The notes below the pieces were generated by a model. It saw only the letters and a list, made by a program, of their open reading frames with translations, was not told the DNA's origin and ran no database searches. A stretch of 64,000 nucleotides of DNA. Origin: Schizochytrium sp. TIO01. Its lineage: Eukaryota; Protista; Bigyra: Labyrinthulomycetes. The stretch covers positions 682,001 to 746,000 of the forward strand of contig SMSO01000034.1 in assembly GCA_004764695.1 (NCBI GenBank). Direction: 5' to 3'. Below, one piece after another: positions 11,531 through 60,734 of the stretch. The translations under genes and the position numbers were made by a program. The stretch's first letter is position 1. Each line of letters opens with the position of its first letter.

Positions 11531-13410
11531 CTAGGTGTTATTAATTTTGGATATCTCACGCTTGATTACACTTGGATCAAGCGTAATAAAAAGAAGCTCT
11601 TTACCATCAGGCGTGATCCGGGAGCTAAGAATATTATGATCCTTGAACTCAACAAGCAAGCTGCGCAGTGCTCGCTCTGTACTGACAAACATTTGGTCGC
11701 GGCATGCATTCAAAAGATCACCAAACTCCATACCATGCAGAGCTGTGCTTGAGCCTTCAATATCAGCAAGGTCAATTTGGTAGTCAGCAATGACTTCAAG
11801 AACAGAAATATGGTTTGGTGTAAGACTTGAAAGAACAAAAGCTGCGCCACGAGAACCATTAATATCCTGGCCCCTTACAAGGGAGGGTGCACCAATGCCT
11901 TCGAAGAGATAAGACTCGTAAGTATGCACTTCACGCCAAATCCATCGAAAACGTTCAAGCTGCTTGGGATCCCAAAGTAGTTCTGCAGCAATGTGGTCAA
12001 CAGAAGCTACGATGTGAACTTGTGGGCTTTCAGCAAGCATACTTAGTGCTTTGCAAGGCCCTGTACCACGAAGGAGTTTACCATCAATATTGTGCTGTGC
12101 AAGAAGAGCAAACGCATTAAGTTGACACCCAAAACGGGTTTTGAATCCACATCGTTAGTTGGTCAGGTCGGCATGTCCTACTCATCGATTGATCGCCTGT
12201 CGTATGTTCGGACATAGAATCCTCGTTATAGACTTCGCATGTTACACAAACGAGAGGAAGTCAATATTGTCAACTTTTCTTAAATTCAACTTACCACAAT
12301 AAGAACCATCTGTTGCGACCACACAGGAGCATCTGCAGCCAAAGTGTAGCCCTTCACTTGACAAAGAGACATTTTAGTTTCACGTGAAGTGAGATCAACT
12401 TTTGGTCTTCGAGCGACCTCTGTGGTCAACTCAACAATGAGAGCACTCATTGCTTCAACTGTCCGAGAGTGCTTAAAGCTCTCTGATTCAGGCAAGCCCA
12501 AAAAATTATGCATGATTGAGCCTAGAGCAGATCTGAGATTAATTGTTGCTGAATATCCTGCGATAACCATAACACAGGACAAAGGATAATTTCTGGCAGA
12601 TTCATAGGCCTTGATTGCTGCGGCATAGCCTTCAAGCACCCTTTTCTTGGAACCGAAGCCATGTACAAGTATATTGAAGCCCTGCTGCATAGCAAAGTAG
12701 TCCCCAGGGAGGCTTGAGCAGAGTGCAGTCACGCATGCATCTGTTGTTTGTGTGGAGACCTTTATAGCAGACTTAGAGTGACGGAGAATCTCGCGAGCTT
12801 CGTTTTCAGAGGGAAGCTCCAGTTGGCCCAGGGTCCTGATTTTTGCCTTACTGTGAGCGTTGCGAAGACTCTCGAGTGCACGCTTCCGTCGCTTTTGCTT
12901 TTCTGTGTTTGTTTCGAGTTCGAAATAGTTCGAAATTTTGACCTTCTTTCGAGATCCTGCAACCAGAGACTCCGTCTGCAAAGGTGGTCCTTCTCCATCG
13001 TTCTCCTCATCATTGTTTCCAACAGAACCACCACCATCATCGTAGTCAACTTCATCATTGTCTTCATTATCGTCGCCATACTCTGTATTGTTTTTTGCTG
13101 CTGGCTTCGCCTTGGCTGATTTCATGTGACGGTGTGTCTTGAGCGCTTTGCTATGCGATGCATCTGCTCTAACATCCTCCGCTTCACTATCAGAGTCGGG
13201 CTGATGGTCATCTTCTTCATCACTTGACATAAGAGGAGCACTCTTTTTAAGCCGTCGCGTACCCTCTTCCGGCATAGTTCCAAGACTTGCGGATGAAATT
13301 CCACGCTCACGCTTGCGCTTTCCAGCGGGCATGATATTAACTGAGTCATCTTGCGTACAATGGGAGAGCGTTCGTTTTTTTTTAATGGCGCCATGACTTG
13401 AGGACGTCAT
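11531..13410 (-). CDS. ORC2: Origin recognition complex subunit 2; exons 13410-12295 and 12094-11531
   Basis: Motifs GFNILVHGFGSKKRVL, VLIV|HNIDG, IVASVDH, LLWD, VLSSLTPN, LVEFKDH. A 200-nt intron 12294-12095 (GTAAGT...CTTAAT...CACAG) joins the two ORFs in frame (~559 aa). Confidence 0.93.
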
Positions 13411-56248: not shown

Positions 56249-58510
56249 TTAATGCGATAAAAGACACTTTTGGCAAGCAACAACCCATTCATCATTTCGT
56301 TTAGTGTCGTTGAAGATCAAGTGCAGGACGAGACTTGCGCAGGCCAACCCTTGATTATCCAAGGCATTAAAAGCAGATTCCAAGCGAGTGATTGCCTTGA
56401 TAGGTGGCAGATCGCTCGCACGTGCGCTCATTCTGATATTCACATGAGCTGCAACCCACTCTTCGTCTGATTGATCGAGATGATTTTCTGAGCATGAATC
56501 CCTCGTCCATTGCAAAATTAGCGTCGACATTCTTTCCAACTCTTCAATGCTTTCTGCAGTCCGTTGTTGTTGGTCTTCTTCAGCTGCAGCAACCCAACCC
56601 TCAGGGAATGGTCTCATTTGCCCATCAACTGCGCACTCTGGCATTGCATAATTCTCATCGAAAAGTAGTTGTGGGACTTGATCATCCCCGCTATGGCCAT
56701 TTTGCAATAAGGAATCGAGATCAGTAGCCTCCAAGGTATGAAACAAAAACCTTTCTACTTCTGGCTGGATTGCTCGCGCTTGTACCAATGCATTGTTCAA
56801 CTCCCCAGCAAACAATGCCTCAAGCTTCTGAGTGGCAGACGTAGCAATATGGGAATTGAAAAGGCGACTGTCACCTAGAGGCCAACGACCGCTTTCATCA
56901 GGACCTGAAAATACTGTTTGTGGCTCATTTAATACAAGGCCGGACTCCTCACTCCGTGTCCAGGCATGCACATCAACTCCTACTGGCTGAATGCTTGGTA
57001 CGAACCAATCAGTATGAAAGAGTGCTCCACTGTGCAATGCCCCGATTGGACGCATGAAGTATTCATGACACCATTCATGAATATGTTGATCGGTATCTCT
57101 TTCTGCTTCGTTCCTTACCCCGCTAATTTTTGCCTTTTCATTTTCACGATTTACGTTGAGTTCATCAGCTTGATTATTCACCCATTCGACAGATCCGGCC
57201 TCGTTTGAAGAATTCCCTGCATCTCTGCCTCTTCTGAAGATTTCTTTGGCAGTCCCACTTTTTTCATCCAATCGCGAAAGATCCTTCCTTATCATCATCC
57301 TTTTCGCCCGTTCTCTTCTTATTAAGTCCCTTCCGCTGGTGGCGATGTCTTCTTCTGAGGCTTCATTGGAATCACAGTTTGTGTACATGGTCTGTAAAAG
57401 CGCTCGATCTGTAGATTTCAAGAGGTCTCCACCGAGCCTTAACGCTTCTTCTTTCCAATGACGCAAATCGATTTCCTGCTTGGGAAGAGTGACCTGGGGG
57501 ATAGAAGCAAACGTATGTTCATCCCACACTGCCTTGCGGTCATGAATCTGCGATTGTGCAAGCTCTGCGTTCGCTTCATCAGCTTTGGATTGGTCATCAG
57601 CTCGGTTCTCTAGGGAATCTTCTTGGGCTTGGGCCCACACACTCGCGGCCTGAAGCTGCGAACCAACTTCTGTGTCAAGACGACGAGAAAGTCTTTGTAA
57701 CATACTCTCTGTTGCTGTTGGTTGCCTCTGACGTCTGGTATTCAGAAGTACAAGTCGGTGAGGGCTTGTTGCGAGTCTAATTTTACCTTTGGCCTCAGCA
57801 CCAACTCCAAAGGTGCTTCCGTTTGAACCTTGTGCTTGCCCACTCACCCCATCCCCAGGTTGAATTTTCACGTCTGCGAATGAACCTCCCCGCGCTACCT
57901 GTGTGTTTGCACCTACTCCGTCAGGGGTTGGGACTCCATCGTATTTGCTAAGCTCGCCTTCGAAGAGTTTCTCGAAACATGCCTCATCCTGGCGGACATG
58001 CTGGGTAATTGAGTTATGTCCAATGTCACGAAATGCAGCAACTCGCATAGCTGCAAGAGCGCGCACAGTGTTGTCTTCTCTGCTGAAAACGCCGTTTTGT
58101 TGACAGCGATTGAAATATGGGTCTCGAATATCTTCTTCCAAAGTCTCGAGTCTGCGATGAATCTCTTGATCCACTATAACCCCTATGTGTCGCGTTGGAC
58201 TTGGTCCATTGTCAGGTCCGCTTGATGACAGTGCGCTGGAATTCGTATGTAAAGGATTAGACTGCTTTTCTCTTGAGGTTGATGTGTATGGGCTCAAGGT
58301 CATCGTAACACCTGCTGAATTTGAAGGTCCCTCCTGATGGAAATTACCTTGCTGGACGACCCTATGTGCAATATGCGCTCGTGAATTAAGCCACGGCATA
58401 GCCTTTACACTCACAGGCGCTAGATCATGAGTACTTCGTGAATCATGACGTTTCCTGCTCGGAGGCTCACCGGCATCTCCAGCGCCACGTGGCTTTATGG
58501 ACCGAGACAT
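56249..58510 (-). CDS. Hypothetical protein, 753 aa
   Basis: Long uninterrupted ORF with coding-like composition; no motif recognised. Confidence 0.75.
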   Translation of the reverse strand: MSRSIKPRGAGDAGEPPSRKRHDSRSTHDLAPVSVKAMPWLNSRAHIAHRVVQQGNFHQEGPSNSAGVTMTLSPYTSTSREKQSNPLHTNSSALSSSGPDNGPSPTRHIGVIVDQEIHRRLETLEEDIRDPYFNRCQQNGVFSREDNTVRALAAMRVAAFRDIGHNSITQHVRQDEACFEKLFEGELSKYDGVPTPDGVGANTQVARGGSFADVKIQPGDGVSGQAQGSNGSTFGVGAEAKGKIRLATSPHRLVLLNTRRQRQPTATESMLQRLSRRLDTEVGSQLQAASVWAQAQEDSLENRADDQSKADEANAELAQSQIHDRKAVWDEHTFASIPQVTLPKQEIDLRHWKEEALRLGGDLLKSTDRALLQTMYTNCDSNEASEEDIATSGRDLIRRERAKRMMIRKDLSRLDEKSGTAKEIFRRGRDAGNSSNEAGSVEWVNNQADELNVNRENEKAKISGVRNEAERDTDQHIHEWCHEYFMRPIGALHSGALFHTDWFVPSIQPVGVDVHAWTRSEESGLVLNEPQTVFSGPDESGRWPLGDSRLFNSHIATSATQKLEALFAGELNNALVQARAIQPEVERFLFHTLEATDLDSLLQNGHSGDDQVPQLLFDENYAMPECAVDGQMRPFPEGWVAAAEEDQQQRTAESIEELERMSTLILQWTRDSCSENHLDQSDEEWVAAHVNIRMSARASDLPPIKAITRLESAFNALDNQGLACASLVLHLIFNDTKRNDEWVVACQKCLLSH

Positions 58511-58876
58511 GTCAAGCTTATTGAATACATACGGATTAGTTGACGTATTCCAGGTGTATGAGCTTTTTGGTTTTATAGATTCCTTTTGTCCAAAACAACG
58601 TAGAGCAACTTGATAATTTGTTACTTTCCTTGTGATGTGTTGGATAGCAAGTTCTCAAATAGGTGCAGATTATTTTGTGGTGTCTTAGCCCTTTGCGTTT
58701 GTTCTGTATGTTCCTAGCAGGCCTTCAATCTCTTCAAGCTTCTAAAGGATAAGTAGCGACATATTAGTTCATTCTGTTATTGTATAGTACTCCTAGCACA
58801 ATTCGTAGGATTTTTGGTATCCGTTAGGTAGAAACAGATGTTTATATACCTTTGTTCGGTTTTCCGCGCAGACGAC

Positions 58877-59031
58877 GCTCCTGTAAGTTCGCACCACACC
58901 TCTGTCCTCGTCCAATTCGACATTGTACTCACAGATTACTCTTAACGACATTATAATTCACAGGTAGCTCAGTTGGTTAGAGCGTTTGGCTTATGACCAT
59001 AAGGTCCGGAGTTCGACCCTCCGCTGGAGCA
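58877..59031 (+). tRNA. tRNA-Ile(UAU) split by an 81-nt GT-AG intron in the acceptor stem (exon1 58877-58882, exon2 58964-59031)
   Basis: Perfect D stem GCTC/GAGC. Anticodon TAT at 58992-58994. Perfect T stem CGGAG/CTCCG with TTCGA loop. The 3' strand CTGGAGC-A pairs well only with the spliced 5' strand GCTCCT|G (6/7 pairs). T-run terminator at 59045. Confidence 0.85.
58883..58963 (+). other. Spliceosomal-type intron inside the tRNA gene
   Basis: Donor GTAAGT, branch-like CTTAAC (58941-58946), acceptor CACAG; these signals are shared with the ORC2 and CSTPP1-like introns in this window. Confidence 0.72.
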
Positions 59032-59044
59032 TTCCATCCAATAC

Positions 59045-59059
59045 TTTTTTATCTTTTTT
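59045..59059 (+). terminator. Pol III oligo-T terminator after the tRNA
   Basis: TTTTTT 13 nt after the discriminator A, followed by more T runs. Confidence 0.75.
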
Positions 59060-59524
59060 AATTTTATTTTTTTTAATTTAATAATATTAAAACGAAGTCT
59101 TTCCTTTTTGACCACGGGTGCGGCTCTTCGGGTTTCATTCCGCACTCCCTACTTGTCGAAAGTACAGCAGACTGTCTACTGCCAAAGTAATCGTGTCGTG
59201 TCAGTAGAAGGTGGTAAGTATCCTTTGTGTACTCTCTCCCCAAATAGTATCAGCTCCTAACTAAAATTATACCTACGTACCTCTACTCTAGCTAGATAAA
59301 GAAACGATGAACGTTTATTTCGATTTTGTTCTCTTGAGTTGAGCGAAGTTGCTGCAATTCAGGTGTCGTAACAGCTGATGGTAGGAAAGCAATCAAGTCG
59401 TCCTCCTGCCAGCCTCGTTTTACTTCACAGGGTCTGAAAGAGGGAACAGATCTTGTCTTGCGTTTACTTTCTTTGCTTACAATAAAGAGTAGAAAGGAAC
59501 ACGGGAAGTAGTTGGTTACTCACT

Positions 59525-60734
59525 ATGGCCCATCCTTCAAACGATGTTTTGGAGCTCGCAGTGCCTTTCCAACCGCTCACTTATACCCAAACACAAGATA
59601 CAGCACAGCAGCCTCTCGACATTGTCCAGACCTGCAACGTGCACATTTATATAAGCGAAGCTTTGTCTCCGATATTATGTAATTCGCATAGCAAAGGAAG
59701 TGAAGCAACATCGGCAAAGCAAACTACTACTTTGGTGAATCAAACAACAAAACATGGAGCACGTTCAAAATTATTCAGACCAAAGTCTGCACTCCGAACG
59801 AACAAAGCTAGTTCAAACCATTCTCGCAACCGTGCTACGAAACTAAGTCGTACTAGCTTACAGCGCTCTCGGAGGTCGCGCAAAGCTCAAGACACAACGG
59901 AAGATGATGGTGAGGATGCAGATGGTGATCCTGAGAGTGATCAGTCATCAACTGACGAAGGTTTTCGTGACCATGCTGAAAATGCAGAGGACGAATCTCA
60001 AAGTAATAGTGTAAACTGTGAGTTTGACAGCAGCGAAGAAGAAGACGAGTCTAACAGTCTATCAACGCGAGACAGTATATCATCAGAGCGCGGGAAAGGC
60101 AAAGGTACTTCTTGTGCTACAGCAAGTCTTAATTCCATCGAACGTCAGATTTCTGACCCTATCCGCTTGATTCAGAAATACTTGAACTCTGTACGAGCTG
60201 GAACTCATTTGTACCAGAGTAATTCCCTACATTTTGACTTCATCCTAGCAACTATCTGGAATCGAGCTTGCTTTGCCAAAATGCTTCTGAGCAGATTTCA
60301 GCTCGCAGATCAAAACAAACTTATCGATTTCGGAGAGTATCTGCAGCTATTGCGACTTCTATGTGAAGATTTTGCAGTTGACTTCCTTCGTGTTTCTTGG
60401 ACCTTAGCAGGTACACAAAATGGTCTTGGGGAATTTCAAGGTGGGCACAGTAGGCACTTCTAGCACAATGCTTCCTTCCCGCCTACCTTTGGGCTTGCTT
60501 AACCACGTCACAGCTGCGTGGGTGAAACACGAAGCCTTGTGTGTGAGAATTAGCGAGAGTATATGCCCATTAGAACCGAGGCTTGATGCTCCCGTCTCTC
60601 AAAACGACGTTCTTCAAGCATTACATGAGTTGAATCACTGTCCTTCTCGAGTCATTCTTGAAGCTCAAAATTTTTCGGGTGGCACTGTTGCAAACTTCAT
60701 AACCCTTATTCTGCTTGCCCTCGAGTCCAAATAA
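59525..60734 (+). CDS. CSTPP1/C11orf49 (UPF0705)-like protein; exons 59525-60440 and 60514-60734
   Basis: YLNSVRAGTHL...FDFILATIWNRACF...EYLQLLRLLCEDF resembles C11orf49. A 73-nt intron 60441-60513 (GTGGGC...CTTAAC...CACAG) joins the two ORFs in frame (~378 aa). Confidence 0.7.

Follow-up and report, generated by a model that had tools for sequence, protein, structure and literature searches.

The DNA examined here is a 64-kb window (64,000 nucleotides of contig SMSO01000034.1 of Schizochytrium sp. TIO01), in which a divergent intergenic region separates a minus-strand gene that starts at position 58510 from a plus-strand gene whose ATG is at 59525. This region contains the body of a tRNA-Ile(UAU), which a genome search found in a single copy. 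Its arms read GCTC/GAGC (D), TTTGG-CTTATGA-CCATA (anticodon), AGGTC (variable), and CGGAG-TTCGACC-CTCCG (T), with 4/4 pairs in the D stem, 5/5 in the T stem, and 4/5 in the anticodon stem. The gene also retains U8, A14, G18 G19, U33, GTTCGA, and A73, and its D arm and variable loop resemble those of the tRNA-Ile(AAU) of the same genome. The contiguous, unspliced sequence (58958-59031) matched Rfam family RF00005 with 45.9 bits (E 6e-9 locally), which is above the Rfam threshold; the pairs 1-72, 3-70, and 5-68 were marked as non-standard, and ARAGORN reported no tRNA anywhere within the 64-kb window. The genomic strand that adjoins the body (58958-58963) pairs with positions 67-72 (59025-59030) at 2/6 positions, whereas the upstream hexamer GCTCCT, hereafter exon 1, forms 5/6 Watson-Crick pairs with the same strand and brings the acceptor stem to 6/7. 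Two mismatches, U6:U67 and U28:U42, persist with exon 1; yeast tRNA-Ile(UAU) likewise carries U6:U67. An earlier reading, made from the letters alone (the sequence-only reading), had described GCTCCT, GTAAGT, CACAG, and the tRNA body correctly base for base, and CTTAAC too, for which it named only the approximate distance to the end of the insert; the three mismatches that it ascribed to the adjacent 5' strand are those marked by Rfam, and the 6/7 acceptor pairs with the upstream exon, together with the two residual mismatches, were as it had counted them. The features of this gene, and of a second split gene described below, are listed in Table 1.

Table 1. Features of the split tRNA-Ile(UAU) gene (window positions) and of the split tRNA-Lys(UUU) gene (locus L043 positions)
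Feature	Position	Strand	Remarks
TATATA element	58843-58848	+	29-34 nt 5' of exon 1, 116-121 nt 5' of the tRNA body
Ile exon 1, GCTCCT (tRNA positions 1-6, forming the 5' side of the acceptor stem)	58877-58882	+	directly 5' of GTAAGT
Predicted spliceosomal-type intron, 81 nt	58883-58963	+	GTAAGT, CTTAAC, and CACAG signals
5' splice site of the Ile insert, GTAAGT	58883-58888	+	
Branch motif, CTTAAC	58941-58946	+	predicted branch A at 58945, 18 nt to the intron end
3' end of the Ile insert, CACAG	58959-58963	+	AG at 58962-58963
Ile exon 2 (tRNA positions 7-73)	58964-59031	+	Rfam RF00005 match
Anticodon, TAT	58992-58994	+	loop CTTATGA; G37 at 58995
3' strand of the acceptor stem, CTGGAGC	59024-59030	+	followed by A73 at 59031
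T6 run, Pol III terminator-like	59045-59050	+	13 nt past A73; further T runs behind
Split tRNA-Lys(UUU) copy, cut between positions 9 and 10	L043:1392-1543 (G000:C13, about 1500817-1500968)		
Lys exon 1, TCCGACTTA	L043:1392-1400		directly 5' of GTAAGT
Lys insert, 79 nt	L043:1401-1479		GTAAGT...GCTAAC...GTACAG
Lys body, position 10 onward (GCTCAGTGG...)	from L043:1480		

The Ile insert carries the elements of a U2-type spliceosomal intron: a GTAAGT donor, a CTRAY-like branch motif within 10-40 nt upstream of the end, and a terminal YAG, with the first AG 3' of the branch motif as the predicted acceptor. As a reference for mRNA introns, we used the 200-nt intron of ORC2 (window 12095-12294, minus strand), whose signals are GTAAGT, CTTAAT, and GCACAG. 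This intron was validated by its flanking open reading frames, which match positions 11-126 and 141-250 of the Pfam PF04084 profile; the ORC2 signals to which the sequence-only reading had appealed thus belong to a real intron, with one half of PF04084 on each flank.

We then asked how often such an arrangement arises by chance. GTAAGT occurs 82 times in 382,564 background positions, counted on both strands, and only 2 of these sites, apart from the Ile locus, are preceded by a hexamer that pairs at 5/6 positions or better with the 3' strand of the acceptor stem. The chance of a comparable exon 1 site is about 1.6e-3 per 300-nt upstream window, a figure that leaves aside two further demands, namely that the 6/7 boundary coincide with an AG and that a branch motif lie 18 nt before it. 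Coincidence is no serious explanation for the architecture of the Ile gene. In the same background sample (the window plus 42 loci), the splice words themselves are scarcer than their reversed counterparts (82 versus 195 for GTAAGT, and 210 versus 458 for CTAAC), an under-representation consistent with an intron-poor genome in which cryptic splice signals are selected against.

Elsewhere in the 64-Mb genome, one of three nuclear loci that match a tRNA-Lys(UUU) anticodon and T-arm pattern is split as well (contig C13), while those on C31 and C34 are intact. The exons of the split copy are identical to the intact C31 paralogue (9/9 in exon 1 and 63/63 in the body), whereas its insert and flanks cannot be aligned with that copy. 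The branch motif of the insert, GCTAAC, lies 30 nt from the intron end, and the final AG is again the first one after it. Both tRNA inserts share the three signals of the ORC2 intron, and their lengths (81 nt in Ile and 79 nt in Lys) are near that of a 78-nt intron-like segment located downstream of the Ile gene, at 59214-59291. Given that a 9-mer match placed directly at a GTAAGT cannot be due to chance, tRNA genes with inserts bearing a full set of spliceosomal signals do exist in this genome. The consequence for gene detection is similar in both genes. Rfam assigned 71.1 and 68.6 bits to the intact Lys genes on C31 and C34 but 49.8 bits, covering model positions 9-63 only, to the split one, a loss comparable to the deficit of the unspliced Ile gene; the split Lys gene escapes ARAGORN as well, in line with the claim of the sequence-only reading that tRNA finders would overlook a gene of this kind. 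Both intact Lys genes (L052:1471-1542 and L061:1471-1542) have an A5:C68 mismatch in the acceptor stem, indicating that imperfect acceptor stems are tolerated in this genome. Just upstream of the Lys exon 1, part of the tRNA 5' end recurs in degenerate form, followed by GTAAGC (GGACTAGCTCAT|GTAAGC).

To our reading of both junction pairs, the tRNA splicing endonuclease is left without a substrate motif, because no bulge-helix-bulge (BHB) motif was found at the Ile or the Lys junctions in a scan that exhausted both arrangements and every cleavage offset. The scan called for a 4-bp central helix, two 3-nt bulges containing the splice sites, and outer helices, and 1.1% of random junction pairs pass it. 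The minimum-energy fold of the precursor contained no BHB either, and its stability was not above that of shuffled sequences (z 0.78). When searched together with flanking sequence (the upstream flank in the case of Ile), the Ile and Lys inserts each matched only themselves in the 64-Mb genome, and so they do not belong to a mobile or transposon family; the chance that the Ile insert is a dispersed repeat, which the sequence-only reading had raised against its own proposal, is set aside by this single-copy result. Two origins of the inserts were considered and rejected. A transposon with target-site duplication is not in keeping with a junction GTA repeat that is specific to Ile (Lys has at most G or AG), the lack of terminal inverted repeats, and the lack of other copies. 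A tandem duplication of the host tRNA, suggested by what looked on inspection like tRNA-derived stretches in the introns, is not reflected in local alignments of each intron against its own gene plus trailer, which were no better than shuffles (p ~0.5).

To define how widespread such genes are, we carried out pattern scans of the 64-Mb genome in which the T loop and the D arm were tied to a donor site, either GTAAGT 45-137 nt or GTRAGY 50-80 nt 5' of position 10, or a donor immediately following the T arm. The scans, whose reach is confined to class I tRNA genes that have a standard T loop and an intron located either before position 10 or beyond the T loop, returned two split genes, Ile(UAU) and Lys(UUU), the latter being a further truncated tRNA with a GTAAGT...YAG insert of the kind for which the sequence-only reading had proposed to scan. 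With just two split genes in 64 Mb, there is no general pathway of this kind. The other tRNA matches were intact genes with a chance donor nearby (Arg-ACG, Gly-GCC, Glu-CTC, Thr-CGT, Ala-AGC, Ser-AGA, Arg-CCT, Leu-AAG, and Ile-AAT).

The sequence-only reading had also asked for an uninterrupted tRNA-Ile(UAU), and none came to light: six genome-wide pattern scans, which presumed standard conserved positions and were not exhaustive, detected no second tRNA gene with a UAU anticodon. In these scans, the anticodon loop was tied to the T loop or to the D arm, with D-loop spacers of 1-5 nt, and the D-arm patterns would also detect genes with a canonical intron at 37/38. Four look-alikes, namely GGTCAGAGCTTGCTACTTATA (4 copies), GGTCAATGCGCTCTCTTTATA (5 copies), C24:2344445, and C33:1885296, were dismissed as repeats or as lacking a T arm and matching stems. 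Two patterns built on the Ile tRNA body gave no match in metagenome scans. In 24 long open reading frames, ATA has a frequency of 8.2 per 1000 codons and accounts for 19% of the isoleucine codons. The genome has a tRNA-Ile(AAU) gene, and a tRNA-Ile(AAU) could in principle read AUA weakly via inosine.

One feature of the Ile gene that the sequence-only reading overlooked is position 37, which is G (loop CUUAUGA). To our knowledge, A37, the site of t6A, is near-universal among tRNAs reading ANN codons. The Ile(UAU) gene departs from this expectation, and all other ANN-reading tRNAs observed here (Lys-UUU, Ile-AAU, Thr-CGU, and Arg-CCU) have A37. G37 thus casts some doubt on the product as a standard elongator tRNA.

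The transcription context of the two split genes was compared with that of intact genes. In each of the 48 intact nuclear tRNA genes examined, a run of four or more Ts lies 0-37 nt downstream (median about 5), and the Ile gene is likewise followed by a typical Pol III T-run terminator. TTTT is absent from both inserts, a weak observation for the Ile insert as 62% of 81-nt windows also lack it. Since the Ile gene has internal A and B boxes, a Pol III start would be expected inside the intron. TATA-like elements of the intact genes are mostly located 41-65 nt 5' of the mature end, with one intact Lys gene having it near -33; against this background, the position of TATATA hints that the transcript may begin before exon 1 rather than before the body. 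In this genome, the gene for U6 snRNA is intron-free and so offers no local precedent for the splicing of a Pol III transcript. The split Lys gene begins 73 nt past the stop of a same-strand gene for an AMP-binding enzyme, and Pol II transcripts are expected there because of this position. Between the Ile tRNA and its downstream gene, there is a strong T-run and AT-rich block. The intron-like segment at 59214-59291 (plus strand; GTAAGT...CTCCTAAC...TCTAG), situated 3' of the tRNA and 5' of the ATG at 59525, probably represents an intron in the 5' UTR of the downstream gene, and a leader intron at this site would place a Pol II start somewhere upstream of 59214. A Pol II transcript and a TATA-directed Pol III transcript are both possible as the Ile precursor.

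Collectively, these data make it very probable that the locus is a genuine tRNA gene into which an intron of spliceosomal type has been set. The central proposal of the sequence-only reading was a spliceosomal intron in tRNA-Ile(UAU); its architectural part is borne out by the splice signals, the absence of a BHB, the unique insert, the failure of the scans to find an uninterrupted UAU gene, and the Lys case, and from these we infer the remainder, namely that splicing occurs, that the spliceosome is its agent, and that the resulting tRNA serves in translation. On balance, we lean towards a precursor that the spliceosome turns into a working tRNA-Ile(UAU). Such a precursor would begin a few nucleotides 5' of exon 1, downstream of the TATATA element. 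U1 would pair with GTAAGT and U2 with CTTAAC, the first downstream AG would be taken as the acceptor, and splicing would join T58882 to G58964. The 7-bp acceptor stem (6 pairs plus U6:U67) would form only once the exons are joined, so that RNase P, RNase Z, and CCA addition would act after splicing, yielding a mature species of 73-76 nt that is expected to start with GCUCCUGUAGCUC and to end with CCA. The fuller proposition, that the sole cognate decoder of AUA is made only after the spliceosome clears an intron from the acceptor stem of a possible Pol II or TATA-directed Pol III precursor, strikes us as evenly poised; the coupling of AUA decoding to splicing that the sequence-only reading suggested is speculative.

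The main rival to this functional reading is a dead or dying gene, in which an intact tRNA-Ile(UAU) was disrupted by an intron-like insertion, for example through reverse splicing and recombination or another route of intron gain, yields no functional tRNA, and AUA is read by tRNA-Ile(IAU) through I:A wobble. G37 in an ANN-decoding tRNA, along with the U28:U42 and U6:U67 mismatches, is compatible with such decay; a tRNA-Ile(AAU) gene is at hand; and only two genes are affected, of which the split Lys gene is expendable in view of its two intact paralogues. Decay, however, would hardly have left the three splice signals at full consensus in both genes despite their unique inserts, the D and T arms and every conserved tertiary position intact, and the terminator and upstream TATA in place. 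It also sits poorly with the split Lys exons, which are 100% identical to a working paralogue down to the 9-nt exon 1, and with the status of the Ile gene as the only UAU-anticodon gene found in a genome where ATA makes up about a fifth of the isoleucine codons. We therefore regard a decaying gene as rather unlikely, though it is the alternative that deserves the most attention. Less probable still is a role outside translation, whereby the tRNA-like body is a processing element in a Pol II transcript, such as the leader of the gene starting at 59525, the 81-nt insert is a leader intron, and cleavage by RNase P and RNase Z shapes the transcript instead of supplying translation. G37 would be irrelevant to such a role, and a Pol II context is suggested by the second intron-like segment, with its implied start upstream of 59214, and by the position of the split Lys gene behind the AMP-binding enzyme gene. 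But the T-run and AT-rich block could hold a promoter of the downstream gene's own, and neither the exact restoration of an Ile(UAU)-type acceptor stem by exon 1 nor the identity of the Lys exons to a functional tRNA is explained.

Two further explanations dispense with the spliceosome. The contiguous sequence 58958-59031 might itself be the tRNA, its 5' strand being tolerated or repaired by Thg1-like 3'-5' polymerase editing, as in some protist mitochondria, with the upstream GCTCCT-GTAAGT being coincidental. The unspliced sequence does exceed the Rfam threshold, and transcription from a standard internal Pol III promoter would begin close to the body. Known 5' tRNA editing, however, replaces at most the first three nucleotides, and the mismatches here are at positions 1, 3, and 5; the GCTCCT-GTAAGT arrangement is an improbable coincidence; and the Lys case is left unexplained because positions 1-9 are absent beside its body. 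We consider this explanation very improbable. The least probable of all is a non-canonical tRNA intron cut by the tRNA splicing endonuclease at a BHB, as in Cyanidioschyzon merolae and archaea. Those lineages do have introns at non-canonical positions, the acceptor stem among them (PMC3978253, PMC4090602), but neither the Ile nor the Lys junctions form a BHB, the precursor fold is unremarkable, and the GTAAGT, branch, and YAG signals would stay unexplained.

The sequence-only reading knew of no spliceosomal intron in a tRNA, and the full-text literature that we searched likewise contained no report of one in a tRNA gene. Reviews, like textbooks, separate two intron worlds, in which the spliceosome removes mRNA-type introns and a protein endonuclease and ligase serve tRNAs (PMC10275265, PMC4090602). 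tRNA-Ile(UAU) is among the tRNAs that usually carry a canonical intron (PMC12530127). As with canonical introns at 37/38, which are removed by TSEN and ligase, the intervening sequence in the Ile gene must go before the tRNA can work; unlike them, it is located at 6/7, has GT...AG ends and a branch motif, and leaves nothing at 37/38. With the insert in the acceptor stem, the mature domain measured by the endonuclease is unable to form until splicing has taken place. The BHB-type and permuted genes of C. merolae, nucleomorphs, and Archaea share with the genes described here an unusual site of disruption and a tendency to be missed by standard tRNA finders (PMC3978253, PMC4090602), but differ in that the present genes lack a BHB, bear spliceosomal signals, and number two instead of being pervasive. 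The nearest parallel is found in the U6 snRNA gene of Schizosaccharomyces pombe, which has an mRNA-type intron, an upstream TATA, and a Pol III T-run terminator (PMC5855946) and demonstrates that the spliceosome can act on a Pol III transcript. It has in common with the Ile gene a spliceosomal-type intron in a small non-coding RNA gene, a T-run end, and an upstream TATA, whereas its host RNA is an snRNA in the catalytic centre of the spliceosome, the usual explanation of its intron gain, and the host here is a tRNA. The mascRNA of MALAT1 is a tRNA-like structure freed from a Pol II transcript by RNase P and RNase Z. It illustrates that a tRNA-shaped element can reside in a Pol II transcript, as may be the case for the Lys gene just behind a protein gene; elements of this type, however, are intron-free and are not decoders.

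If the spliceosome-dependent tRNA is real, it would cross the divide between mRNA and tRNA introns. The spliceosome would be an obligatory tRNA-maturation enzyme, with approximately one in five isoleucine codons dependent on mRNA-type splicing, and spliceosomal introns would be able to colonise and persist in tRNA genes. Together with the split Lys gene, the Ile gene would represent a fourth class of disrupted tRNA gene beside the BHB-intron, split, and permuted ones, and the polymerase that makes such precursors would become a question. It would also mean that tRNA finders systematically miss such genes, thereby biasing both the number of tRNA genes and the decoding capacity attributed to protist genomes. 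As the organism is culturable and transformable and its transcriptome has been sampled, the case is directly testable.

Several other observations on tRNA-related sequences were made during the scans. A dispersed family of more than 30 copies consists of a tRNA-like T arm (GGTCCCGGGTTCGATCCCCCC) followed by GTAAGT and often lies about 2 kb from contig ends (e.g., C6:1209-1274, C33:1989-2054, C34:1990-2055, and C32:1651-1716); it may have arisen from a tRNA or be a subtelomeric repeat. Another family, with about 25 copies, reads GCAAAGGCCGTCGCAAAGTCTCTGCACAAAGCATGTCCTTCTGTTCAAATCTAGTAAGT. A further dispersed repeat, which has a tRNA-like hairpin (reverse complement, ...GAATTGCGTTAATATTCGCAAACCAGAGGTTAGTGTTCAATGC), occurs in about 40 places beside a TGGTGGAATGGATGATTG...TTTATA repeat (e.g., C6:13075-13198 and C13:7205196-7205319) and is possibly a SINE-like element. 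Large tandem arrays of tRNA-Val(GAC) and tRNA-Asn(GTT) were found at loci L004-L006 and L020-L030 (G000:C8 and C30, about 9.38 Mb); a GAC anticodon for Val is unusual in a eukaryotic nucleus, where AAC is the norm. Contig C15 contains the same tRNA set twice, at an offset of 41,149 nt, and C37 (about 41.6 kb) contains it once, and C15 is probably a concatenated mitochondrial genome. Protein similarities mark the source as a thraustochytrid: among the neighbouring proteins, a sirtuin is 99% identical to a protein of sample MMETSP0961, which is also at JGI, and 68% identical to Hondaea fermentalgiana, and another neighbour shares 35% identity with Hondaea.
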